NCBI GenBank assembly: GCA_904063045.1
Contig: CAJFCJ010000002.1
Coordinates: forward strand, 2,068,422 to 2,132,421
Reading direction: 5' to 3'
DNA: 64,000 nucleotides
Source of the DNA: Dimorphilus gyrociliatus
Taxonomy: Eukaryota > Animalia > Annelida
A model generated the notes under the pieces. It saw only the letters and a list, made by a program, of their open reading frames with translations, was not told the origin of the DNA and made no database searches. Both the position numbers and the translations under genes were made by a program. Positions within the stretch are counted from its first letter, which is position 1, and each line of letters opens with the position of its first letter. This document shows positions 14,931-40,657 of this stretch, piece after piece.

Positions 14931-18168
<3,238 letters not shown>

Positions 18169-18265
18169 AAATAGTAAAAATGTATACCAATAACTCAGAA
18201 AAAAGGACGAGAAACAGCATTTTTGTAAGATACATTTATTCGACGGTTAAATAAAGTTCTATTGT

Positions 18266-23225: not shown

Positions 23226-25219
23226 ATGAACGTGAACAGTTTGAATGCCGCTTGCGATAAGCAGAGAAAGTACTTAATGAATGTGTTAACTGTAATTGTC
23301 GTCGGGGGTATTATAACTGCAACAGTCCTCCTCCTTAGAAAATCGGCAATAGAAGATATGACAGATAGAAAAAGCAATCAACAATCAACCAATGTCGACA
23401 AATCAAAACTATCTAAACTTAACATGAAAGATAGATGTTATCTTTCTAAAAACAAAACATGCTATCATCCCAATTGTATTATATCATCATCCAATCTGCT
23501 GTCTGGAAGAATTCAAAAGATATCAGCTTGCCAAAATTATTATAAGTATTCTTGTGGGGGTGAAACAATTACACGCCTGGACGCCATCAATTCGAAATTA
23601 ATTAGGATCTTTGATCAAGATTTTCGCTATTTTGTGAAGAGATTTAAGTAATATCATCTTTGCAATTATCCTTTTTATAGATTGAATAACATATATATGT
23701 AATCAGTTTAGTTCTGATTGCATGTTTGTATTACAAAATTCTTTATAAGATCTACAGATGAGGAATTATTTACCGAAATTCGCAAATTTTACTTTTCGTG
23801 CTTGGAATCTGTATTGTCTGAGGAATATATCATTGGAATAATGAGAATCTTCAACAGAAATAGATTAAATCCCTACGATTCTGAATGGGATGAACAAAAT
23901 TGGAACTATAGTAATGCTCTTGGGATAGCTTTAAAGTATGGTTTATTACCAATCAATTTCCAAGAAGAACATGGTGTTCCAGTTGTAGAAATCAAAGAAA
24001 ATTTAAAGGTCAATTTAATAAGGAACTACGCTCTTGTAGAAAGATTTCGAAAGAAGAAGTTACTTTTTATCAAAGAATTAGAAAGGGACAAATTTATAGG
24101 CAAAAGGTCAAATCAAGTGATAGAAAGGGCGATAGTTGAATCTTTTAGGGTTGAAAAACATAGTTTTAAAGTAAATATTCATCCAGAAACAGCTAGTTTA
24201 CTTTCATTTGGCGAGACTTTATCTCCGATCAAAGGCGCGTCTTTACTAATTAGTATAGTCTTATCGGATGCTATTGATAAAGTTTACGATTACGAATTGA
24301 TGGATATTGCAATTAGGTATTTTTTTTTAAAGGATCCCTTTACCATTTTTATTACCCTAAGACTCTTTTTAAAACAACGTTTATGTAATATAGAAAAGAA
24401 CATTGCGCCAGTTACGTAACTAAACTTACACCGCACGTGGCTTTGACAATGATCAACTCTTACGAAATCATTAAAGAGCCAGAACCGCTAAATTTCTTAA
24501 CTGATGTCCCAAAGAAGATCGCTTCTATACTCTTAAAGAAGTGGAAGAAGCATAGTTTTCCGGAAAGGTCCTTTGGGTACATTACAGACTCAATAGGAGA
24601 TTTATTAAAATTTTGGAAAAAACCGGATATTAAGATTGTTTATCGTACATTTAAATTTCCTCGTAGGGAGTTTTCCGAAATGTATTCGTATGCGTTCAAG
24701 AATTATGCTAACAATTGGTTAAATAATCTTAGACAATGGAGTCTTTTGCATATTGGATTAGAGAATTTCGAAAGCGGAAGGGATATGTTGTCCGATATTT
24801 TTCGATATACCCACGCTTTATCGGTTAATCTTGTGAAAGGTCTATTCTCTCTTCATCCGGCGCATCATCCTGAAGTATCAGTCTTCTTAAAATCATTTAA
24901 TAATTGTTTAAAGAGAAAATTCAAAGAACTGTCAGAAAGCGACATGCGGAATACATTAATCGATAAGATCGCTTTCGAAATCGTTTACGAATTTATGACG
25001 AAATACTATGGAGCATCGGCCGTAAAATTACCAGGATTTCAAGGTCTTTACACGCCGGAAAAGGTGGCTTTTCTATTAAATTCTCAATCATTATGTAGAA
25101 TCGGTGGAAGAAAACGAATGGAAAGAGTAATTTACACTTATTCAACAAAATTCAAAGAAACTTTTTCATGTGACAGATCCATTTTGATCAATTTCGCAGA
25201 ATGTTCTATTTTCGAATAG
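23226..25219 (+). CDS. Neprilysin/ECE (peptidase M13)-like type II membrane protein, probably catalytically inactive, 604 aa, 3 exons (23226-23647, 23750-24316, 24394-25219)
   Basis: N-terminal TM anchor, M13-type Cys pattern CYHPNC...CQNYYKYSCGG, KFYFSC, HCASYV, and C-terminal PGFQGLYTPEKVAFLLNSQSLC...KFKETFSC...ECSIF. Two phase-2 GT-AG introns join the three ORF pieces. No HExxH motif found. Confidence 0.72.
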
Positions 25220-25594: not shown

Positions 25595-28500
25595 TTAATA
25601 CAAGAGAATTCTCTTCTCAACGGATTTTCTACAAATCGGACATTCATGCATTCGGTCACCACATAATTGGCATGTTCCGTGCCCGCAAAGGAATATCATA
25701 TTCTTTATCCTATCCATACAAACTGGACAGCAAGTCTGTATAAAAGAGGAAAAGTTAATATCATAATGCGCCAATAAACTTGTATTACGACTGTTAAAGT
25801 AAAAATAAAAGAACCTGATCCTTAATATCTTGCAGCTGTTGCTGTAGCTTTTGAACGTCTTTGATAGAATTATCTGCTCTACCGTTATTCATTATTGTTG
25901 CGCTAGGCGTAGAAGGAGCTGGTGGTGGTGTTCCGCCGCAACATACAACAAATGGCACCATCTTGTCAATATTCGATCGACATTGAACGCATTTCTTCAT
26001 TAGGCTACCGCAGGCTAAATTAAGAAAGCAAATTATTATATAACAGGGCTCTTTGGAAGCGTCCCTATTTGTTTTTAGCTTACTATGACAGGCGCACATG
26101 TGGCCGCAAGGCTTGAAGAGAACGCTAGCCTTCTTGTCCGAGCACACGACGCATTCTTCAATCTGTCAGACACGTGTTTTACTTAAAAAATGAGAAATAT
26201 AAGAATGAGGAAATTTTAAATAACCTTCGTTCTTGATTGTACTGTTTCTTTACACATTAGACACTTTTTCACTCTTGGAGAGCAGAGGGAACAAGTGGTT
26301 ACATGGCCACATGGCCCGAATAAAGTATCTCTTCTTAGGTCTGAACAGACCATACATTCTTCAACGCTTTCGCTTTCGCTACCACAAGATGGCGTGTTCG
26401 CGTGAAGGCTTTGGGGGGCTCTTTCTCTGTGACACTTAACTAGAGTCTTGCACAAATTAGGATCAGGGCATAGATCTAGAGGACTCTGTCCTTTCTTATT
26501 TTTTATTTGTAAATCTGCTCCATTAGCCGCCAAAAAACAGGCGATAGACGCAGAAGACTTTTTGTCTGTCCCTGGTGTTCCTAGTCCCATTAGCAACTTT
26601 CCAACGTCGTGCATATCCTGCAGTTGGCGCAACTGCGATAGCGTATGATGACGTAACGCCTCATGGAGTGGCGTATCTCCATCTTTATCACAAATGTTCA
26701 GATTACAACCTTGTCTTACTAGGAGTCTTACTATCTGCGTATGCTGACGTTCGACCGCAAGATGGAGTGCTGTTTGTTCGTTAACATTCTGAATATCCAT
26801 ATTTGATTTTCCCTGAACAACTAGGAGTTCAGCTACTTCTAAGTGGTTATTTAAAGCTGCTAGGTGCAAAGCTGAAATAGTAAAGAGGAAATGCTTTACA
26901 CTGATAAAATCTCATTTAGTCTAAGACTTATTAAGAACCTGTGTAACCGTCGTCCTTCTTTTCATCCACAAGCCACGGTCTGCTTAGCCTTGATAAGAGT
27001 ATTCTCATGGCACTGTCCGGGATATTTTATAATAAATAAATAGAGAGATGCAGGACTAGAGATTGATAAGCATATGTTTCCTATTAACTAATCTATATCG
27101 ATGATGCAACAAAGGAAAAGAAAGTTGGTTACTTTCTTTGTCTTATTTTATTATCTCTTTATTAGATAATAAAACCAATTGCATGATGGTTTAATCCGAT
27201 CCCGATAAAGCCTTTTGGTTTAATTGCCTCCCATTTTTTAGAAAATCTTTTGGAATATAACTATAGTTCGAGAAATCTGTGAGAGTATGGAAAAACCGAT
27301 CCGTCCCTTAAAAGTGCAAACCTATAGCGGTTACCATAGTTACCATGTGGTACACGGCGGAGGGTCAAGTGTTTATTTTTGGCAAACCGTTCCTTGCATA
27401 GTTCGCAGGAAATATTTTTCTAAATATAGGCCTATGGGGAGAAACGCGGAAAAGAGGCTGGAATCGCAGAAATCGACTATAGGAGGGTGTAAAAAATATC
27501 GTATGGTTATAAATGGAACAGCGAAACGGTTTGTAAGTTTGTAGGCGTTCGCTTTTTATAGACCAAGTTTTTTACAAACAACCTGGCTTTTCAAATATAT
27601 ATATTTATACAATAGCCTTCTAGAATATCTTTTACGCTTCTTAGGCCTCGGATGAAGCCTTCATCGTTAAACAAACCCACCTTTGTTACGGGATGCTATT
27701 GGAAAGTGTCGTTAGAGGACGTCAAACGGTGTACAAACAACTTTCAAATTCAGAACCCTTTTTGGCACCCTCTTATCAGTACTTTTTATATAATATTTTT
27801 AAAAAATCATCATAGATCAAAGACCAACCGCAAAAATAAGTTTATATACGTAACTAAATTCATAGCGTTTTTCGCGCGGTTTTTTTTGCTGTTTACGAAC
27901 CAAATTGAAACCGTATACATTAACAGATTACTCATACATCTCATCGCCGAGAAATCCCGAAAAAAAAAACTTTGGACCAATCAGAGAGATGGAAAAAGCG
28001 GAAACCAGTCTAATATGCAGATTAGACAACGACCCGCGCTGTTGCTATCGCCTTCATTCGACCTCGGCGGACGGCGTTGAAAAGTCAAAATCAATTTGAA
28101 CTGTTCAAACAGTGAACTCTAATCTTTTAGTGTTCATTTGAAACAGAATGGAACCGAATTTGATGTAAGTTTGTGCGATTTTGTTTAACTGTATCGGCCA
28201 TAAAATTTGAGTCTTTGGCTATCTGATATTCTAATTCGAGTCTATTTTTAGAACACCAAACTTTTGCCGCGCCCTCGTTTGTACCAAGATAACTTTAAGC
28301 AGCAGCCCATTCATCCAAACATTGGGTGGCTGTATTTTTAGACTATCAAACTTAAGTTAAAGATGTATTTAAAGTAAAACTAATAGCGATTTTACGATTT
28401 CGATAACGTTTTCATTAACTTGAGCTACCTAAGAAATGCACCATAAAAAAGTACTTTAGTTTAAAAGTCAGTAAAAAGAACTACAAATGGTGTGAAATAA

Positions 28501-30808
28501 GCAGATAAATGTCTTAATTTTTTACCATTGTTCTATTTTTAAAGGAAATATTTTGGATGTTAAAAAAACGAGGAACCGGAACGCCATTTTGTATCACGTG
28601 GTTGAAACCTAACCCGAAACCGTTAAGATAAGACAGAGGTTTGCCTGAGTCTGCTACAAGCATTCGAGTACGAAGGATTGAACCTATTTCAGCGCACTTA
28701 ATGCCCCGTACTTATTTACACTCCATATAAGAGTTATGGAATGTAAAGAAGTATGTCGTGTTTATGCGCAGCATCTTCTAAAACTTGGACAAAAAAAACA
28801 GCACAAAAATGAAAAGATAATTAAAATGCCTTCTTATAAAGACATTTGCACACAAAATGCGCACATTACAAAATAAGGGTAAGCTTTTAATTAGTAATTA
28901 ATTAACACGTTTTCAGGGGATGGAATTGTCAGCAAAACGTGCATTTACATTATTTAGTTTTCCCAAGGTATTTTTCCGCAAACGCAACATAACTCACGCC
29001 ACCTATCGATAGCTATTGCTTTCTAACGCCACCTGTTGGACTGTAAACAGCATCCATCCTCTGCAAAGCAATTTAATCCTAATTTATATGCTAGATTCGA
29101 CTCGTGTGCAAAATTCCCGCTAAATAAAGAGCTTTATAAAGGGAAAAAGGAGAGCAAATTCAAATAGTAGACAGCAATAGAATTGCCTAATTAGGTCAAG
29201 ATATCCCTTGCTGATTTTCGGCGTCGCAACGGCAAAACCGTTCCAGTTGGACGGTCGAACGCGTATATTTACTAGGCTGAGAAAGAAACGCCTAGACTGC
29301 TTAAGATTAGATATATAGTTTCGTATCTGATCGATCTGCACAATGACAGATGAATATCCCGGACTTCTTGGTATGTCCCAAAACAAGCAGTAACAATACC
29401 AGCATAAAAGCGCATCAAAATGCATAAGTTGATTTATCCGCAGATAGGACGATCAGTAATTGCCTTTGGTTGAGATCGTAAAATACATAAAAGTAATCAA
29501 TGGGTAGCGTTAATTTGTGTGTTCTGGGGAATACACGAAATAGAGCGATATCTCTATATTAAATTAATCCTTACACCGTACAATTCTGTTGTTTAATGTC
29601 ATTCGTACTAATCACTAAGTGAACTTGTCATGTCTGAATTTTCAGTTACTGGTCATCTCATCGAAATAAACTAAAATCGTCACGTGACCGTCGAATACGT
29701 AAAGTGAATAGGGCGAGCGCAGTAAATCGAATCAAGCGCTGACAAACAAATGTCGAATGCAAACGTCGACCGTTTCCTACTTCTTTTCTCGATTGTAAAC
29801 ATGAGCTATAAAAATGCGTAGAAAATTGGCAATCGCCAAAAAATCTGCAATTCCTGCCATTTGCAGTTGGGGATTATGGGTCGGTCCGATACAGCATAAT
29901 GACGTTTTCAGCAAAAAAATTGCATATGCATATACGCCCTAATTAGGAGAGGAGCTAGCTTGGTCTAATTTTATAAACCTATATCATATATATATACGCT
30001 ATATAAATAAATTTGGCGCTTATCGACCAATTTAGACAGCGATGCAAAAGTATGAAGCGTTCGCGCGTATACAGAAATAGAGCCGACCGCAACGGCGGCA
30101 GCAATACTGCATCGATTGAGTCAATCTAGTTTTGGCTGTAAAGATGCAGAGCCCTCTGTAGTTGGCCCTCTATTGCAGTTTTTCTCGCACACTTGATGCT
30201 GTCGGATGATACAGCTCATTTCTTATCTTCGTCCAAATTTTTATGTCACTTTCCCCCTCCCCCATTCGCAGTCTAAATGCTATCGTAAGTATAACTAATA
30301 ACGCAAATTTTTTTCAGCAATATCCTCAAAAGTATAAATATTTAATTTGATCATACTGCAAAACTTGCAGGAAAAAAGAACGAATTATTCAGAATAATTT
30401 GTTCTTTTTCTCATTTTTTTCCTTCTTCCCCCTTTTTCTCTTACTCCCTATCTTTATTCCTCTATCTATCTATCTATCTACCCCTCCCTCTTAGTCATTT
30501 ATTCTCCTTTCCTTTCTTTTCGTATATTGGCTATTGCTGATGAATTACAAGTAGAAAAAAAATCTTCCATCTCCCTCATTTTCTATTTATATACAACTTC
30601 ACTTTACGCTCGTTATACATACATAAAATACAATAAGCCGTATCGTACTTTTTGTGAGCTAGAGTCTAAGAATTTTTAGACGTCGCAAATTTATTTTCCT
30701 ACCCGAACCCTCTCGTATAAATTCTACTCATTTCTATTCTATTTTTAAACTCCATCTTTTTTTTTTAAACAAAGATATTTTTTTTCTTTCGACCATACTA
30801 CTTGTATG

Positions 30809-30852
<44 letters not shown>

Positions 30853-33800
30853 TATATCTATATATTTATTTGTATTATATAGGAATTTTCGTTTTTATAT
30901 AAATAACGTTCTAGTGCGAAAAAAAGTAAAAAGACGCTGCTAGGCAGGGTCGTGTAAAAACAAAGCACAGTTCGACAACTGTTCCTAATGAATTAATGTA
31001 TTTTTGTGTCTGTCCCGAAACTCATCAGTTTTGTTTAAAATAGCCTTGCAATTTATCATATCTTTTAATACAGATTCCCTTATTATTATTGTCTGAGAAA
31101 GAAAGAATAATTTCTTTCTATTTATATAGACTTAATATATTACGTAGTGTGTATCTTTACTAAAATATTTAAAAAAGAACGTGAGAAATTGAGAGAGCGA
31201 GAGAGGGTGGGAGAGTGAGTAAGAAAGAGAAACGTTGTGCGCAAATTCCAACTATATCTAACGAATGCATCGGAATTTGAATTATATTATACGTATAATC
31301 ATTATTTTTGTTGTTGAAAAAATGAGTTTATAGTTAACGTTTTACTATTACAATGATGTTAAAGAGGCCGAGAGCATTTGTTAAATTGCAACATTCTTTT
31401 TTCTTCCCATACAGCATCTCAGTGTTCCCAGAGGGAAAGGGGAAATATCGTAAAAAACGCCAACATTATCCCCTTAGATCAGCTCTCGTTTGGGGAGAAT
31501 GAAGAATGAGCGAGGAAAAAACTATATGAGCGATCGAAAAAAATTGCAGCGTTATAAGACGGACGTCTCTTCTGAGTTTGGCGACAGAAATCAATAATTG
31601 CAGATCGGACAAGATCTGCTCTGGATTTCGGTTTTGTTTGTTCGTGTTATTTTTATCGGCGGGCTGACTGGCCGGCTGGCCGGCAGTAGACGCCCTAGTT
31701 TGTCCGAGCTAAATTTCCCAATTGGACGCTCGAAAGGCGTCAGCCGGGATAACGACGCCTATTTTGTAAGTAAGCTGATATTAGACGCCGTCCTACCGTG
31801 CAATTCGTTAATTAGGATTTTGTGTAAAAGAACGATAAGTCGTAGCGCGTTGGGATATCTGTGTACCAATAGCTTAATCAAGCCACTACTATTAATTTTT
31901 ATGTTTTCTCAACAGATGGCGTCATATTTCAAGAAGAAAGTAATGACTATATAAGGGGCATACACTCAGAGTTGGTTGCGATGTGGCCAAATTGTAAGAA
32001 TAGAGCAATTGGTCCCCTTCAACCAGCTGTGTGCATTGCCCGAATTCTTCGGCTTATTTCCGTATGTTTACATTTACATAAATTAAGAGCGGAAATAAAC
32101 GCTTTTCTACAAACCTGGGATTTCCTCTAAGCGCCGCGTGATGTAATGCATTAAATCCGTTATTATTAGCGACCGTCATATCGGCGTGGTGATCTAATAA
32201 CAACGTCAGCATGTCGTCCCTCTTTTTGCTTATCGAGTCGTGCAACGGAGCGTCGCCTTCTATATCCTGTCGGGCGTTCATTCAGATTATAGAATGTCAA
32301 ATGTATTGAGTTGTTCTATTCTTTTTCTTTTCCAATCATTGAACCCAAAAAGATTTAAGACAATGTTACCTGTAAGCTTGGATGACAGCTTAATTTTAAT
32401 AACATCTTCACAACACCAATATGTCCTTTATTCACTGCTATATGTAAAGCGGTTTGTCGTCTCTTATTCCTAGAGTTAAGATCGCATCCGGCACTATATA
32501 GTAACTCTATAGCTAAGGGTTCGTCACCAAAAGCAGCGTGATGTATTGAACGGTCTCCATCCTTATCTTCTACTTCCAAATCGACATTGTACTTTATCAA
32601 TACTTTAATCACATCCAGATGACCATTTTGTGACGCCGCTTGCAGTGCTGTGTGACCAGCAAAGACGCCATTTACATCCGCTTCCGGACACTTTCTTGTT
32701 AAAATATCTTCGACTTTTTGTGAATCTCCATTCGCAGCACTCTTCACTAAATCTTCATTGACATCGCCGCTTACGTGTGTTTCAAATAATTTTTTTAAGA
32801 GGGCTCCCAAACGCTCTAAATAAGAAATTTAAGAGAAGCATAGATTTTACATTAAAGCGTCCTAAAAGAGATCAAAGTCAATACTATTAGTACTATTGTC
32901 GACGCCACCTGACTTTCAAAAGTCTAGTTGCGTGGAAAGCAAGTGTACCACAAGAATATAACCCTAATATGAAGGCTAAGACTTACCTCCAGCTGTATGA
33001 CCGACAGTGGCTCCATCTGCCGAAGCCACTTTCGTGACGGCTAAGGGATTATATGTCCATGAGGTGCCACAAACTTCCACTTTCAAGTCGTTGTCGTGAT
33101 AAATTTGTTGGACTCGGCCAATCTTGCCCAATGTCTTTTAAATAAGGAGATACATATCAAGTTAGATTATAGAAACATAAAAGGACCGAAGGGTTAACAT
33201 ATACGATCAAATTTGACTTACTGGCAGCATAGCCTCTGCCCATTCTCCGTGTCCTCTCTGCAGCGACTTAATCCTTTCAATATCGCTGCAAATCTGAACT
33301 ATATCCCCAACAGAGAAATTCGTATTAGCGGATGAATTTTCAGACGAGCTTGCCGAACTAGGTAAGGTATTAGCTTTGGTCAAGACAGCTGGGTTAAAAG
33401 TCCATCTGCAAAAAGGAAAAGGACATAGAAATAAAAGTATCACTAATAGGCGGCAATTTTTCCGCTTTTATTTAGTCGCGCAGAAAATTTCATATAAGTA
33501 AATCGATTCCATTAGATAAAGACCTTTTTTTCTCTGTTTTATACAAGGACAACGCTGAATCGTCTCTTTGAAGTGCAACGTTTTTTACTGGTGTATCAAT
33601 TCGACGGTCTTTATGTAAACCAAATGAATTTAGTGTTGTAGGTAACGGATAAAAGTTGTTGTACGATCTAGCCATACTAGCTAACGTTTGATCAGACTAC
33701 ACTAGAAGGCCTATGATGTTTACCTCGGTATATTGTTATATTTTAATGGTTACCGTACTTAAAAAGAAGATTAGCAAAGTATGAAGTGCATGTCTTGTCT

Positions 33801-36800
33801 CATAATGAAATGACGATTTTTTAAAATTGATTTGGCAATGTAACAAATATTTTTTTAATTAATATTTCATTCTAATTCTTATCAACTAACCTATTTCCAC
33901 TAGGATAGGAAACAACAATATCGTAGTCTTCGTCAATGCCAACAACGTTGCCAGTAGTTCCCAAGCACTTTATGTGTTAAGGAATAAGGTTGTTTTTATA
34001 TCAAAGTAAAAATATGCTATATGGATTTTTTATTACCTCAAACATGCCATCCGTCCATCCACCGTGACCATGTTGCAGGGTTTGAACAATTTCTAAATCG
34101 AGATCAACATTAACTTGATCTCCCATAGCTAATCCACCAGCTCCAGACCTAGTCCCAGTCGCTTGTTCTCCTAAAATATTATTAATTTTATTAAATTGCA
34201 AACAGCATATTTCATTAGTTTAAATTCAAACTTTGATATAATTAGATTCGCAAATATCAGAAGAATAAATTATACATCTAATACTATCAAGAGATTTTAT
34301 TCGGTGCCAATTATTAAATGATAATAGAAGAGATAAAAGTAAAGAAAAAAACTCAACCTAAAAGTGGAAGATGATCTCTGTAGCATTGTGATCCCTTGGC
34401 ATCGCTAACCACCTTCAGATCAGCCTTAAAAAATATTAAAATAGTCAATAGATTAGTCTTTGATTCTGTGCTACTTGATTATGTATGCAAATTTAAAAAA
34501 CAAGTAAGCTATATAGCAATAATGAATATTTCAAATAGATATACAAAAGAATAAAAGCTTAAGTTTCAATCGACAATAATCCTAGAATGGTTAGAGGAAG
34601 TTCTTTTTAAGACTATTATTAGACTAATCAATCGGATAAAGATTCGGAATAAAGTATCATTTTTAAAGTATTTGGTTTTTGTTTTGGAAAGTTGGAATCC
34701 TTTTTAAAACTTGTAAGGCGGAAACGTCAATTGTAATCCTCCGCCAGTAAGTAACAGTTTAGACGTATCTAAAAGTGAATGTTCATCTTACCATTCCTTC
34801 AAAGCCACTCCTATATAAATTTTTTGTTCCTATGTCCCATAGTACGTAAGCAGCACTACGAGGAGATTGGGCAGCCCAATCTTGAATTTCGCTAACTTTT
34901 CCCCGTCTCCCATTGCCGCCGTCCTGATCTTCCCATTGCCAATCAACTCCCCTAACAACTCTTGCACCAGGGAATATGCCGCGAGTAGTGATTTTTTTAC
35001 TTTTTCGCCTCATTTCCATCAATACCCTAAAAGGAGGAATAAATTTACAGAATGACGTAAAGGGAAAAAGGTTAATAAAAATATATTGAACAGAAAATTA
35101 CCTATCTCCTCCAGGTGTAGCAATCCTATGAAACCTATGTCTAAGATTATGTTTATCGTTGTGATAGCAAACAGAACACAATTCGAAATTAATACAATCG
35201 GAGCATTTCCATCGTATGCCATAAATCGGCTGTTGTCTACAGGAATCGCACGTCGTGCCGTCATGTTTGCTACCTGTTAATTGAATAAAAAATTATTGTT
35301 TGAATGCAAGGCAAAATCTATATTTGTAGATAAAAAAAATATTCAGTATAAAGGCTAAGAATAATTTAGATTATTCATTGAATTTTTGATACCCTGAAAA
35401 ATTGGGGCCAAAAAAGGAAACGACTTAGATATATTCTATGCACTAGTTTAATATACTACTGGAAACGGCAACGTGTAATTTAACCTACTTAAAATAATGT
35501 TATTTATTAGTCTTTTTCTACATCGGGAAAAATCTCACGAAGTGATTCAGTAATACAAGGATGCGTTTCCTTAAAACCAGCTGTAATTTCGATCTATGTA
35601 AGGAACTGCAATCCATCAACACCGACGCCAAAAAGTATTAATTCAGACAGTTGCAATCAAGAAAAACAGAGAAAAACAGGGAATCTTTAAGTATTAAGTT
35701 TATCAACCCTAATATTGAATTAAAATAAAAAATTTAAGTACAATCTAACAAATTTATTAACTTGTAAAAGAAAAGATCAATATTATGTTTGATATTCTAA
35801 AGTTTTTTTACTTCCAGTTATTTTCTATAAATACATAGCAGACCCTTGCTTTTAGAGCAATTTGCTATATAAAATTCGTCCAATTGTTTGTAAGTAGGCC
35901 CAAAGACATAACATTTATCAGCGGGATATTCCCAACTAGATCTAAATTGCAAATCTGTATCCAGAGCTATTAATTTTCCAGTGGATTGGGAATATATTAA
36001 GAAACCTCCATCCATAGTTGGATATATGGAAAAGGTTTGAACACTCGTCTTAAATTCTTTTAATTGCTTCTGAGTGGTGGAACTATATAGAGAAATGGAG
36101 GTCCTCTTTGTTGATAGAATATTAAAAAATTTTGGGTCATTGACGTGAGTTTCAATTAAAACATCTCCACTCTTTGTTGGTAATAAATTTTTGACTGAAC
36201 TCTGCATTTGAAAAGCCTGTATGAACTTTGAACCTTTATATAGCCAAACGGTTTTCTTATCTTCTGACAAACAAGTAATCAAAACCTGACCATTATGCGA
36301 AAGATTTACAGTAAAAGTTGAGATATTTTGCTTGATGAATTCATTACTTTGCAAGCCAAGCATGATATGCCCTTGAGTGATATCATGAACATAAACTTCC
36401 CCTTTAATGACACATAGATCGCCTAATTCTGATTTGGTTGAATATAGCTTGGTGACATTGCCGTCGAAATCTGTAAATTTTATAGAGTAGGTTTTAGAGA
36501 GTGTAACTTGTCTCTTTGAATCGACATTATAAATTCCATCCTCGTTAATAAAAACGCTATCGCACTTCTTAAAATCCATCTGCCTGCTATTTACAAATGC
36601 TCCTAGGTTTCTAAAACCATCTCTTGCTTGGACGAGTGATCCTGATATGTATAATTCTCCAGTAATTTTCGTATCCAAAACGCTTCCTGGGGTACCTGGT
36701 TTGAAATTGAATACCATTTCGGACCTTTTCATATCTTCCCCTGGATTAATACCAGCATTCTGATAGTTTACATATGAATTTTCCAGAATTTCAATTAAAT

Positions 36801-39800
36801 TTCGCTTTTCGGCATTTACATATGCTATGATCTGATCAAAGTGCTCATTAATGCTATTCTCTACTAACGACTTTTGCATGCTAAGGACATCAGATTGATC
36901 AGGTAACTTCGGATACAGACCATCTTCCCTTCTAGCGTAATTTGCAATATCAATAATATTATGACCAATGTGCGAGATTGAAGCACAGATGTTACAAGCT
37001 AGTCTGTAGTCACAATTCAAGCATATATAATTAATTTCGACCAAATGTTGTAGACATAACGCCCGAGCCTCTGTGTCATCTGCAGGTACCTTTGATTCTT
37101 TACAAGACGGGCATAATCCAGTACTATCAGAGTTCATATACCTTTTAAGACAATAGTCACAAAAAGTATGGGAACAGATAAAATTTGTAGGACTGCTAGC
37201 CTTCCATTCCATAAAACATTCACCACATTTCAGAGTACTCTGAGAAAAATTGTTAGACATAGCCATGTTAATGTTGTTCTATAGATGCTCGAAGAGTGTT
37301 TGAACACAAAGTGAGTAATTCTGGTTTATATACCTGGGCTGTGAGTCATAGGTCTTATCATTGTTTATAGCCTGCATGTGTTTCATTTGCACGTCGAAGT
37401 GAGTCATCCGTTACAATATAAGACCGTAGAAAATCGATAAGGTCTACATCTACGTTATACTTTTAATTTTTATTGCTTAATAGAAATAAACATAGAGTTT
37501 ACGCGAACGTCGATTAACTTAATGAGAGGGGAGAATACTTTTGAACCATTCCCCCACCTCTAGAGATTTTACCAATATAAAGTTCTTTTAGTTGACTGTG
37601 CGTTGGAACACATAAAAACGAGGGCTCAGAACTTAACAAAAACGTTGACATAACCCTTAACTTCGAATCAAGAGAATAAACTTTCAATTCATTAATACCC
37701 AGTACTAGGACGCCTCCATCTATCGTTGGCTGAATAAATAATTTCTGCTGAACTGTAGTAAATTCATTTGTTATCTCCTTCGTTGACCTATTAATAATAG
37801 CTATTACTGATTCAGTCGTTTTAAACAACCAGAAGACAGTTTTTCTTCTTTGCTTAACAATAAGAATATCTCCTTTCGACGTGGGGAAAACACTTTCTAT
37901 TCGTTCCTTTAGATGAAATATATCCAGCAACTTTTTTCCTTTGTATAGCCAAACAGTTTGTTTATCAAGTGACAAACAGGTTATTAATATAGCTTTAGTA
38001 GAACTCATTCTCGCCGAAAATGTACTAATCTTTTGCTCAATAACGTCTCCCGAATTTAAACCTAAATGTATGCAACTATTTTTTACGTTATGAACGAATA
38101 CTTCCCCATTTATTGCAAACAATATCCCAAGTTCGTTCTTTGTTTGATAGAGTGTTTCAGTTTTTGACGTTTTAAAACTCAGATAATTTACCTTATAGGT
38201 TTTACTGGAGAATAAATTTTTTATTGTTTCTACTGTGTAAATTCCGTCTTCATTAACGAAGAACCAAGTACACTCTGGTATTGTGGTTGTGTTTTTAACA
38301 ATGAAAGATGAAATATCGTTTAGGGCAGGTGGAGATTTTTCAAATAATTCATCAGGTACTGATACTTCACCGATAATTTTTGCATTTGAAATATCTTCAA
38401 CACAACCTTCTCTGTAATAGAACATGCTATTCAGCGTCTCCTTGTTCAGTATTCTTCTTAGTTCTTTTGATAAATCTACACTATTTTGTCCTTTGGTTTG
38501 AGAGAGTTGAATCAAATAATTTGAATAATTAGACTGAGTATTCTCCAATGAATCTAAAATAGTCTGCTTTTCCTCTTGTAAACGGAGGGTTAACTTTTCA
38601 AAATGACTTTCGACGTTTTTAACTGTTGTCATTTTACAATCAGTTAATACTTTAATTGCATTTTGAATTCTTTGGGCCTTTGGACAATCTTTCACTGCTT
38701 CACGTAAATGTTTCTTTGCTGATTCATTTTCATGTGTTTGATTTAGATGGCTTTCGGAAAGGCAAATGGGGCATGTAATGTTTTCTTTAGGAGAAGCCAT
38801 TATTTGTAGCACACAATCCGAGCAAAATACATGAGAACACGTGCTAAAAGATTGTACAGTGTTATATTCTTGCAAAAGTAGCTGACAAAAACTACAGTTT
38901 TGAGAAATAGCAGATTCAGCCATCACGGTTAAATAATTTCGAGGATAGTATTTCAATATTAAATTTACGATTGATGATATTTCCTTTCTTTCTTAAAGTT
39001 GATATTTAGCCTTTAATACTATCTCGTGTCTGATAATTCAATTTTACCTAGCAGCAATCTAACACACAGCTGTCACGTGAGGGGGGGACTTTTACAGGAT
39101 ATGACGTCATATCAATTTAAAATGGGAAATCTCGTTGAGGTGTTATCATTTAATATGTAATCTTTACGGATTGTTAAATATAAATTTATGATTACTAATT
39201 AGTAACCATTAAAAAATAATGCAAATTTTAAAGTAAAAAAATAAAAGATTCAGATAAAAAAACATAGTTTTAATTTCTCTCTATCTATATATAAATTCAT
39301 TATAAATTCTGTTGTGTAACATTGCAACACAACTTTTTCATTATAAAGAGATTAATTGATCATTTTTTTAATAAACATAGCACAATATATATATATGTAT
39401 ATATATTAAAATAATTAACAACATTCTATTCCCTTCCCTTCTCCCTACAAGCTTTGTAATATTCCTTTATTTCTATCAACGTTACTCAATTTTTTACTGT
39501 TCTATTTAATTTTTCTTATTAAATTAATAATTTGTTAAAGATGAAATACACGAAAGTTAAATATTAAAACGTTCTATATAATTAAAAATGAAGGAAATTA
39601 TAAATAATAGAGAAATATATCTATTAGATCACATCGAAAAAAGAGAACGTTCTTTAAAATGTTATAGAGTAATATCGTTTTCTATAGATATTATAATATT
39701 TCTGGATTAAATGTTACTAGTGTACATTTAAAAAAATTGGAGGGAAGAGGAGAGGCAGTGGGTGATGGGGTGTAAATAGAAAAAATATAAATACATTCTA

Positions 39801-40657
39801 TTGTATGAACAAAAAAGAGAAAAAGAAATATAGAAGAAGAAAGTATTCCTCACATTTATTTGTTTTATATCTATCATTATATGCAGTATATTACTCTTGA
39901 GCACGTATATCCAAAGAGATTTATAATTTTATACCTTTTTAAATGTGTACCGTGAGTATAGGTGTATAAAATTTTATAAATAGATTCTGTATCTTATTGA
40001 ATACATTGATATGTGTACGTCTTTTGTAATTAGAAACATTGGCTGGCTCATAGACTATAAATAACACTTGTAAGTGATGAGAACTATAGAAGAGAGCCAT
40101 TTAGTGGATTTATCTTTAAAATAGTAGAATCAAATATGATATGGAAATTTAAAACGGAATGAACTCTTTTCCAGGGTATACGCTATATAGTTATCTAACC
40201 GTGATTATGATTGTTCAATACAGATAACTCGACGACCTTATTTTTTAACATGTAAATGTTCGTTTTACTAAATTAACTAAAATTTAGTAGTGGTAGTCTA
40301 TTAAATCTGTTAACTGTACAAGATTTAGACAAACCTGTTGGAGCACTGTCGTATATCCTAAGATCATAAGCTCCTGAGCATCGATAGTTAGCAGCTGTTC
40401 CATTATCCCAAACAACAACAACTTCTTCGGGAGACTCAAAATTTCTAACTGTTCCAACATGACCTATATGTGGTTCGTAAAATTTTGTCAAATTATTTTG
40501 GCTGATTCATCGACTGAGTCAAAAAATTATAAAGTTTACCTTCTCCACCGTCCTGTTTCGCCCACTTCCAATCAGGTCCTCTCATAACGCGAGCTCCAAC
40601 GCCTTCCATCATATTCACTCGGACTACTCTACTACTTCCATTACTATTACTTTCCAT
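25595..40657 (-). CDS. MIB1: E3 ubiquitin ligase mind bomb 1 (MZM, REP, ankyrin repeats, three RINGs), multi-exon
   Basis: ATG at 40657 gives [68 protein letters not shown]. Also a ZZ finger exon (35273-35100), [22 protein letters not shown], ankyrin exons (32817-32115, 27012-26220) and the terminal [48 protein letters not shown] ending at 25595. Confidence 0.97.
27513..28341 (+). CDS. Candidate novel 144-aa protein nested antisense in a MIB1 intron, just upstream of miR-1; exons 27513-27532, 27645-27778, 27927-28083, 28131-28164, 28252-28341
   Basis: ATG in A-3/G+4 context with an in-frame stop immediately upstream. Four GT-AG introns (two with GTAAGT donors, two with weak donors) give 435 nt without internal stops. 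No family recognised. Confidence 0.5.
28703..28762 (+). ncRNA. MIR1: pre-miR-1 hairpin; mature miR-1-3p about 28737-28758 (UGGAAUGUAAAGAAGUAUGUCG)
   Basis: The first 20 nt match the canonical miR-1 sequence UGGAAUGUAAAGAAGUAUGU. The complementary 5' arm CCGTACTTATTTACACTCCATA (28706-28727) pairs with it across a short loop. Confidence 0.96.
29186..29195. promoter_or_regulatory. CArG box (SRF consensus) CCTAATTAGG, copy 1
   Basis: Exact CC(A/T)6GG match between miR-1 and miR-133; function untested. Confidence 0.45.
29938..29947. promoter_or_regulatory. CArG box (SRF consensus) CCTAATTAGG, copy 2
   Basis: Identical palindromic CC(A/T)6GG match 752 bp from copy 1; function untested. Confidence 0.45.
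30811..30849. repeat. (TA)n microsatellite in the MIB1 intron between the miRNAs
   Basis: Perfect dinucleotide run. Confidence 0.97.
31966..32036 (+). ncRNA. MIR133: pre-miR-133 hairpin; mature miR-133-3p about 32009-32030 (UUGGUCCCCUUCAACCAGCUGU)
   Basis: Matches canonical miR-133. The 5' arm AGTTGGTTGCGATGTGGCCAAATTG (31970-31994) pairs with it (AGTTGGTTG/CAACCAGCT and GGCCAAATTG/CAATTGGTC). Confidence 0.96.
35818..37266 (-). CDS. Intronless TRIM-like protein A (RING, B-box2, coiled coil, beta-rich/NHL-like C-terminus), 482 aa, nested in MIB1 intron 2
   Basis: RING-HC CGEC...CSHTFCDYC...CPSC and B-box CLQH...YICLNC...CNIC...HIGH. The C-terminal half is beta-strand rich and clearly paralogous to the neighbouring ORF. 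Confidence 0.78.
   Translation of the reverse strand: MAMSNNFSQSTLKCGECFMEWKASSPTNFICSHTFCDYCLKRYMNSDSTGLCPSCKESKVPADDTEARALCLQHLVEINYICLNCDYRLACNICASISHIGHNIIDIANYARREDGLYPKLPDQSDVLSMQKSLVENSINEHFDQIIAYVNAEKRNLIEILENSYVNYQNAGINPGEDMKRSEMVFNFKPGTPGSVLDTKITGELYISGSLVQARDGFRNLGAFVNSRQMDFKKCDSVFINEDGIYNVDSKRQVTLSKTYSIKFTDFDGNVTKLYSTKSELGDLCVIKGEVYVHDITQGHIMLGLQSNEFIKQNISTFTVNLSHNGQVLITCLSEDKKTVWLYKGSKFIQAFQMQSSVKNLLPTKSGDVLIETHVNDPKFFNILSTKRTSISLYSSTTQKQLKEFKTSVQTFSIYPTMDGGFLIYSQSTGKLIALDTDLQFRSSWEYPADKCYVFGPTYKQLDEFYIANCSKSKGLLCIYRK
37325..37406 (-). promoter_or_regulatory. Putative own promoter of TRIM-like A: TATATAAA (37325-37332) plus two AP-1 consensus sites TGAGTCA (37342-37348, 37400-37406)
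   Basis: Exact motif matches 59-140 nt upstream of the ATG at 37266. Confidence 0.45.
37514..38923 (-). CDS. Intronless RING/TRIM-like protein B (RING, coiled coil, beta-rich C-terminus, no B-box seen), about 469 aa from ATG 38923, nested in MIB1 intron 2
   Basis: RING CSFC...CSHVFCSDC...CPIC. Shares blocks with paralogue A: NEDGIY, SKTY, ISTF and [15 protein letters not shown]. Confidence 0.76.
   Translation of the reverse strand: MAESAISQNCSFCQLLLQEYNTVQSFSTCSHVFCSDCVLQIMASPKENITCPICLSESHLNQTHENESAKKHLREAVKDCPKAQRIQNAIKVLTDCKMTTVKNVESHFEKLTLRLQEEKQTILDSLENTQSNYSNYLIQLSQTKGQNSVDLSKELRRILNKETLNSMFYYREGCVEDISNAKIIGEVSVPDELFEKSPPALNDISSFIVKNTTTIPECTWFFVNEDGIYTVETIKNLFSSKTYKVNYLSFKTSKTETLYQTKNELGILFAINGEVFVHNVKNSCIHLGLNSGDVIEQKISTFSARMSSTKAILITCLSLDKQTVWLYKGKKLLDIFHLKERIESVFPTSKGDILIVKQRRKTVFWLFKTTESVIAIINRSTKEITNEFTTVQQKLFIQPTIDGGVLVLGINELKVYSLDSKLRVMSTFLLSSEPSFLCVPTHSQLKELYIGKISRGGGMVQKYSPLSLS

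Follow-up and report, generated by a model that had tools for sequence, protein, structure and literature searches.

A 64,000-nucleotide (nt) stretch of the genome of the annelid Dimorphilus gyrociliatus (contig CAJFCJ010000002.1, positions 2,068,422 to 2,132,421; the whole of it is here called the window) carries MIB1 (mind bomb 1), which encodes an E3 ubiquitin ligase, on its minus strand. One MIB1 intron, about 5.1 kilobases (kb) long, holds the precursor hairpins of two microRNAs (miRNAs), miR-1 and miR-133, on the opposite strand. The gene, the intron with its flanking exons, and the two hairpins are located as follows, in window coordinates.

25595..40657, minus strand: MIB1, with about 16 coding exons, located by tblastn with Lingula MIB1.
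32115..32266, minus strand: MIB1 exon 11, from the joints 32265 to 32369 and 27012 to 32115.
27013..32114, minus strand: MIB1 intron 11 of the gene model, 5,102 nt, phase 2, from its GT and AG ends, a serine codon split AG/T, and a spliced joint.
26939..27012, minus strand: MIB1 exon 12, from the joints 26871 to 26939 and 27012 to 32115 and from tblastn.
28697..28765, plus strand: precursor hairpin of mir-1, with its mature 3p arm at about 28737-28758, from Rfam RF00103, its fold, and alignment.
31963..32035, plus strand: precursor hairpin of mir-133, with its mature 3p arm at 32009-32030, from Rfam RF00446, its fold, and the identity of the mature sequence.

Residues 1 to 994 of Lingula MIB1 were collinear with the minus strand from position 40657 to position 25598, at 55 to 94% identity per exon (tblastn). 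The similarity runs over the full length of the protein and takes in the MIB/HERC2, ZZ, and ankyrin repeat regions and the C-terminal RINGs expected of a MIB1 orthologue, and homologues belonging to the MIB1 family carry Pfam domains PF06701, PF00569, PF18346, PF12796, and PF13920. In an exon-by-exon comparison, the MIB1 exons of the window were closest to those of mollusc, nemertean, and annelid MIB1 (80 to 84% identical) and, on that evidence, look spiralian; only the exons flanking the miRNA-bearing intron have exact coordinates in this comparison, those of the others being approximate.

The miRNA-bearing intron has its donor GT at positions 32114/32113 and its acceptor AG at positions 27014/27013, so that the gene reads CCC AG/gt...ag/T GCC ATG. 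The upstream exon ends with codons for HHAALRGNP and then AG/GTTTGT, and the downstream exon is preceded by GGACAG/. The joint from 27012 to 32115, which skips 5,102 nt (CT...AC on the plus strand), was present in RNA library contigs from two studies (runs X6 and X8); one of the contigs carrying it is a 3,246-nt MIB1 mRNA contig (run X6). The miRNA-bearing intron is removed from MIB1 mRNA by splicing. RNA contigs also show two neighboring introns spliced out, and near-identical RNA contigs were present in coral metatranscriptomes. The initial annotation of this DNA had described a 5.1-kb, phase 2 intron in a gene whose other introns are mostly about 50 to 500 nt, and the measurements agree with that description: the other MIB1 introns are about 65 to 480 nt long as estimated from the ends of high-scoring segment pairs, the two measured from reads are 67 nt and 103 nt long, and the exception is intron 2, at about 5 kb.

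The mir-1 hairpin matches positions 1 to 79 of its Rfam model with 46.0 bits, a narrow margin over the gathering score of 45.6, and mir-1 was the sole family found in the whole window at Rfam gathering thresholds. It folds into a stable hairpin (-30.6 kcal/mol; z = -5.6 versus shuffled controls) with the conserved mature sequence, including the seed GGAAUGU, on the 3p arm. In a six-taxon alignment, a 21-nt stretch of that arm is invariant and 8 stem pairs show compensatory changes. The mir-133 hairpin likewise folds stably (-34 kcal/mol; z = -3.2 versus shuffled controls) and carries on its 3p arm the mature sequence UUGGUCCCCUUCAACCAGCUGU, which is identical at 22 of 22 positions in Owenia, Branchiostoma, Oryzias, Lineus, and Daphnia; its consensus hairpin in the six-taxon alignment has 23 pairs, with compensatory changes in 2. 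Both hairpins fold about equally well on either strand, as miRNA hairpins should, and they were assigned to the plus strand by their mature sequences and by the higher Rfam scores obtained there. They had been annotated as plus-strand hairpins about 3.2 kb apart; their starts indeed lie 3.27 kb apart, with miR-1 upstream, and, being on one strand within tens of kilobases of each other, the two form a cluster.

Other Rfam matches were rejected. A mir-375-like match at 31596-31652 (23 bits) has no hairpin holding a mature-like segment, the mir-297 matches (30798-30869) fall on a TA repeat, and the matches to IRES_APC, SNORD112, and RsaF score far under the respective gathering scores. A repeat of the dinucleotide TA and a low-complexity tract, CT-rich/TCTA in composition, occupy 30802-30878 and 30451-30492 in the least conserved part of the intron.

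We compared the window with the genomic loci of MIB1 in Owenia fusiformis (an annelid), Branchiostoma lanceolatum, Oryzias latipes (a vertebrate), Lineus longissimus (a nemertean), Daphnia pulex, and Drosophila yakuba. In the first five, both miRNAs are antisense to MIB1, with miR-1 upstream of miR-133, in one large intron; the mature miR-133 of the window has 0 mismatches in these taxa, and the mature miR-1 has 2 or 3, at its 3′ end. By exact protein-to-locus mapping, the intron in the five taxa comes after HAALRGN[P/A] and before AMR[I/V]LLSK, and the window and the five taxa share CCN AG/GT...AG/T(C) GCN ATG, that is, one codon and phase 2. In Branchiostoma and Lineus, this intron is number 12, in agreement with the “intron 12” of the literature. 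The hairpin alignments, together with the same codon, phase, strand, and order, constitute a direct test that supports orthology of the miRNAs, of MIB1, and of the miRNA-bearing intron across the window and the five taxa. Orthology of the intron had initially been proposed from human exon boundaries, and mapping of MIB1 intron positions across bilaterians bears the proposal out, with the same position and phase in five of the six loci (Oryzias and four invertebrates); the vertebrate position was tested in Oryzias latipes, and the human “intron 12” was taken from Yu et al. 2008. The arrangement is common to protostomes and deuterostomes and so dates at least to their common ancestor, as its suggested early bilaterian age implied. 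In Drosophila, the same miRNA and host gene families exist, but the linkage is broken: mib1 of D. yakuba has 3 introns, none at the codon of the miRNA-bearing intron, and no miRNA was found across the 8.9-kb locus. The linkage can therefore be lost. Besides the hairpins, nothing in the intron was conserved between phyla in cross-phylum blastn comparisons.

The loci compare in size as follows.

Five other taxa: intron, 23.8 to 34.3 kb; miR-1 to miR-133, 2.9 to 12.3 kb; miR-133 to MIB1 exon, 3.3 to 14.5 kb.
Window: intron, 5.1 kb; miR-1 to miR-133, 3.27 kb; miR-133 to MIB1 exon, 84 nt.

The window intron is 5 to 7 times shorter than in the other taxa, yet it is about 10 to 75 times as long as the ordinary introns of the same MIB1 gene. 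The earlier statement that the arrangement has resisted genome compaction thus needs to be split: it does not hold in comparison with other taxa, where the intron is much longer, but it does hold within the gene, where this intron far exceeds its neighbors and more than half of it appears to be constrained.

Annotated MIB1 genes vary about 40-fold in span with the same exon set, from 15 kb here to 148 kb in Acanthaster planci and 571 kb in Apis laboriosa. Two database “proteins” are MIB1 fragments that start at or just upstream of (S)AMRILLSK, with unrelated residues ahead of that point. In other genomes, MIB1 is apparently broken by gene predictors at the giant miRNA-bearing intron, as reported for S. 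purpuratus.

The nesting has been known since 2008, and the window adds one more case of an ancient arrangement already on record; the novelty that the initial annotation implied for an invertebrate must be given up. In the relevant passages, Yu et al. 2008 (PMC2500172) placed the miRNAs in the “same intron (intron12)” in bee, beetle, and vertebrates and speculated about a link to Notch, and sea urchin miR-1/miR-133 in MIB1 was described in 2024 as conserved with vertebrates (PMC11076791). The codon and phase of the MIB1 intron are absent from those passages of the two papers, and we found no published account of the codon and phase or of the nesting in annelids or nemerteans. What these sequence comparisons would add is modest, namely, base-level proof of intron orthology (codon and phase) across Spiralia, Ecdysozoa, and Deuterostomia and a compact locus that appears to be highly constrained.

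Among the known systems, the vertebrate miR-1-2/miR-133a-1 pair, of which Mib1 is treated as the host in fish (PMC4177693), is like that of the window in host gene, strand relation, miR-1-then-miR-133 order, and (in medaka) codon and phase. The spacing, 2.9 kb in medaka versus 3.3 kb in the window, is also similar, whereas the medaka intron measures 28.6 kb rather than 5.1 kb and its miR-133 lies 5.8 kb, not 84 nt, from the exon. Control by SRF, MEF2, and MyoD is documented in vertebrates, whereas in the window it is suggested by conserved motif matches. A Ciona cluster was reportedly described by Kusakabe et al. in 2013. The insect (honey bee and Tribolium) and echinoderm cases show the same nesting in invertebrates but in very large introns or genes (in sea urchin, about 142 kb separate the flanking exons, and MIB1 of Apis laboriosa spans 571 kb), whereas the window locus is compact and spiralian-like. 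In flatworms, miR-133 and miR-1 show linkage to Mind bomb genes (PMC4405270), a spiralian linkage resembling that of the window; there, however, more than 10 kb and predicted genes separate the two miRNAs, which neighbor different Mind bomb genes, whereas here both lie in one intron of a single MIB1 gene.

Conservation within the intron was analyzed against one relative, represented by a 21-kb genomic contig (L008) that was found through an 81%-identical homologue of a RING-finger protein encoded at 35821-37266 of the window. L008 aligns with window positions 26002-34437 at 82% identity, distributed as follows.

MIB1 exons 10 and 13, third codon positions: 65 to 70% identity.
Eight short introns: 50 to 85% identity, with 7 of the 8 within 50 to 75%.
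Non-genic part of MIB1 intron 2: almost unalignable.
miRNA-bearing intron overall: 84.8% identity.
mir-1 hairpin: 98.6% identity, the sole change being in the loop.
mir-133 hairpin: 100% identity.

When a conserved block was defined as at least 40 nt with at least 95% identity to L008, such blocks made up 2,950 of the 5,102 nt (58%) of the miRNA-bearing intron, compared with an identity of 67% at synonymous sites. The blocks alternate with stretches of 44 to 75% identity in the same intron, and only 142 of the conserved nucleotides belong to the hairpins. Of eight larger open reading frames (ORFs) checked in the intron, five have frameshifting indels in L008, and two tested ORFs had no Pfam match. 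Coding ORFs in the intron, including one of 142 amino acids (aa) at 27652-28080, were rejected on one or both of these grounds, and the conserved intron sequence is therefore read as non-coding. More than half of the miRNA-bearing intron is probably constrained, and its dense content of constrained non-coding sequence is the probable reason why it has remained long. High identity also extends into exon 11, in which 50 of 51 third positions are identical to L008 (other exons, 67%; P = 4e-8). From this exon, the conserved stretch continues through mir-133 into the intron, and about 920 nt are about 99% identical as one piece. Candidate explanations for the synonymous constraint in exon 11 are that the exon overlaps the miRNA transcript or regulatory sequence belonging to it, or that splicing enhancers lie beside an exceptionally long intron.

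Sequence at 27282-27649 is likewise among the conserved blocks, and three parts of the conserved sequence are candidate regulatory or transcript elements.

27862..28313, plus strand: candidate promoter and first non-coding exon of the primary miR-1 transcript (pri-miR-1).
29055..30240, no strand assigned: cluster of conserved non-coding blocks between the hairpins, candidate intragenic enhancers proposed from conservation in L008.
31365..32114, plus strand: nearly invariant non-coding stretch of about 750 nt around mir-133, about 97 to 99% identical to L008.

In the first of these, blocks at 27862-27984, 28026-28093, and 28239-28313 are 94 to 97% identical to L008, and the relative retains a CCAATCA (27977-27983), a donor-like GTAAGT (28165-28170), and a MEF2-like CTATTTTTAG (28242-28251). 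The CCAAT box block (27977) is followed by a conserved segment ending in the GTAAGT (28165), about 700 nt upstream of mir-1. Blocks in the second (29055-29307, 29391-29540, 29690-29936, and 29961-30240) are 97 to 98% identical to L008, and two CCTAATTAGG palindromes between the hairpins (29186 and 29938) are kept in the relative. The third holds a GTAAGT (31766), an acceptor-like site consisting of a polypyrimidine tract and CAG (about 31897-31915), and an AATAAA (32094-32099) 16 nt before the MIB1 exon, all of which may belong to a plus-strand transcript.

Several other genes lie in or near MIB1 in the window. Two intronless tandem RING-finger genes (35821-37266, minus strand, 482 aa, and 37517-38956, minus strand, 480 aa) are nested in the roughly 5-kb MIB1 intron 2, on the same strand as MIB1; in Pfam, the RING alone was matched, and weakly. 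The sole database relatives of the nested RING protein were two proteins about 80% identical to it, and L008 also carries the nested gene pair. About 7 kb past the 3′ end of MIB1, a multi-exon gene at about 15139-18170 (plus strand) has UCH protease exons after an N-terminal ubiquitin-like domain, a USP14-like architecture. Usp14 belongs to a conserved teleost gene block around mib1 (PMC4177693), and the proximity of the USP14-like gene to MIB1 in the window may be an old linkage or a coincidence. Between these two genes lie three serial long ORFs (23226-25219, plus strand; 141, 233, and 260 aa), the two longer of which have no Pfam match; the series may represent a lineage-specific gene.

We consider it highly probable that the window carries the ancestral bilaterian cluster of the muscle miRNAs miR-1 and miR-133, antisense in the orthologous phase 2 intron of MIB1, in a compact, spiralian-like genome. 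The pair would be transcribed from the plus strand by its own intronic promoter or promoters, independently of MIB1; the promoter candidate is the conserved block with the CCAAT box, located about 700 nt upstream of miR-1 and accompanied by conserved MEF2-like and CArG-like matches. The transcript would then be processed by Drosha and Dicer to the 3p-arm miRNAs, in muscle. Independent plus-strand transcription and processing in muscle are proposed because of what is established for the family: miR-1/miR-133 transcription is independent and driven by SRF, MEF2, and MyoD in vertebrates and by Mef2 and Twist in Drosophila. In the account that we favor for why the nesting persists, the cis-regulatory and primary miRNA sequence of the cluster would keep the intron long in a short-intron genome, and MIB1 would be a bystander host.

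Several observations weigh against this interpretation. The mir-133 hairpin matches its Rfam model over the full length, but its score in a sensitive scan (36.2 bits; E = 1e-6) is below the gathering score of 55.5, which is an operational cut-off and not a biological definition. RNA library contigs overlap both hairpins (28624-28781 and 31877-32206; run X5), but they are of low depth, unspliced, and strandless and could derive from pre-mRNA or contaminating DNA; the RNA evidence as a whole consists of assembled RNA library contigs, which carry no information on strand, transcript ends, or tissue. Conservation and motifs are the only grounds for recognizing the candidate pri-miR-1 promoter and first exon. 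The window contains MEF2-like and CArG-like matches at chance frequency, so their enrichment is no evidence, and only their retention in the relative is suggestive. The measure of constraint comes from a single relative.

The nesting might instead persist by inertia, in that a nested gene can leave its host only by two breaks within the intron; the linkage would then be maintained without function, and the conserved blocks would have nothing to do with the miRNAs. That the hairpins alone are detectably conserved between phyla is consistent with inertia, as are the unchanged mib1 level and splicing in mice with a deletion of the cluster (PMC3777988) and the retention of mib1 in Drosophila without the intron and the linkage. 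However, neutral sequence should be deleted where introns are typically 65 to 480 nt long, and here 2.9 kb is at least 95% conserved compared with 67% at synonymous sites. Inertia accounts for the linkage and leaves the retained length unexplained, and we give it an appreciable, if minor, chance of being the right explanation. Another possibility is sense-antisense coupling, in which the 3′ end of pri-miR-133 would overlap exon 11 and its 5′ splice site, and interference between miRNA transcription and MIB1 expression or splicing would keep the pair together. Coupling would tie MIB1, an activator of Notch ligands, to miR-1, and miR-1 represses Delta in Drosophila; a Notch link was among the ideas raised in the passages of Yu et al. 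2008 (PMC2500172) on the nesting. The end of miR-133 only 84 nt from exon 11, the AATAAA just before that exon, the near-invariance of its third positions, and the unspliced contig covering 31877-32206 all fit such an overlap, but the contig carries no strand information, and the constraint on exon 11 could reflect splicing enhancers near an unusually long intron. Moreover, miR-133 is 3.3 to 14.5 kb from the exon in the other five taxa, and therefore the overlap cannot be the ancestral reason for the nesting; the mouse knockout, too, is without effect on mib1 (PMC3777988). We regard coupling as distinctly unlikely.

The high identity to L008 could also have a cause other than purifying selection, such as a mutation rate that is low in this region, gene conversion, or recent introgression. 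Reliance on one relative and the 920 nt around miR-133 and exon 11 that are about 99% identical as one piece leave room for such a cause, but the interleaving of conserved blocks with stretches of 44 to 75% identity within the intron and the ordinary synonymous divergence of flanking exons 10 and 13 make it very improbable. Independent entry of the miRNAs into this one MIB1 intron in different lineages is hardly credible, as is the idea that the hairpins of the window are unprocessed relics: codon, phase, strand, and gene order are shared by six taxa of Spiralia, Ecdysozoa, and Deuterostomia, and the relative matches the hairpins at 98.6% and 100% identity, with the lone change in a loop.

A more speculative reading, which we consider rather doubtful, goes beyond the favored account of a bilaterian muscle-miRNA cluster with MIB1 as a bystander. 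The intron may have been squeezed to a near-pure functional non-coding array (about 2.9 kb of blocks and the two hairpins), with the primary miRNA transcript ending on or inside exon 11 and imposing a dual constraint on its synonymous sites and 5′ splice site. If this is true, the squeezed intron would represent the regulatory landscape of the bilaterian muscle miRNAs in minimal, dissectable form and would possibly reveal a real MIB1/miR-133 sense-antisense coupling. The nesting of miR-1/miR-133 in MIB1 is among the oldest linkages of a microRNA and its host gene; this miniature 5.1-kb locus is small enough for whole-locus tests of which blocks drive expression in muscle and of whether MIB1 is a bystander.

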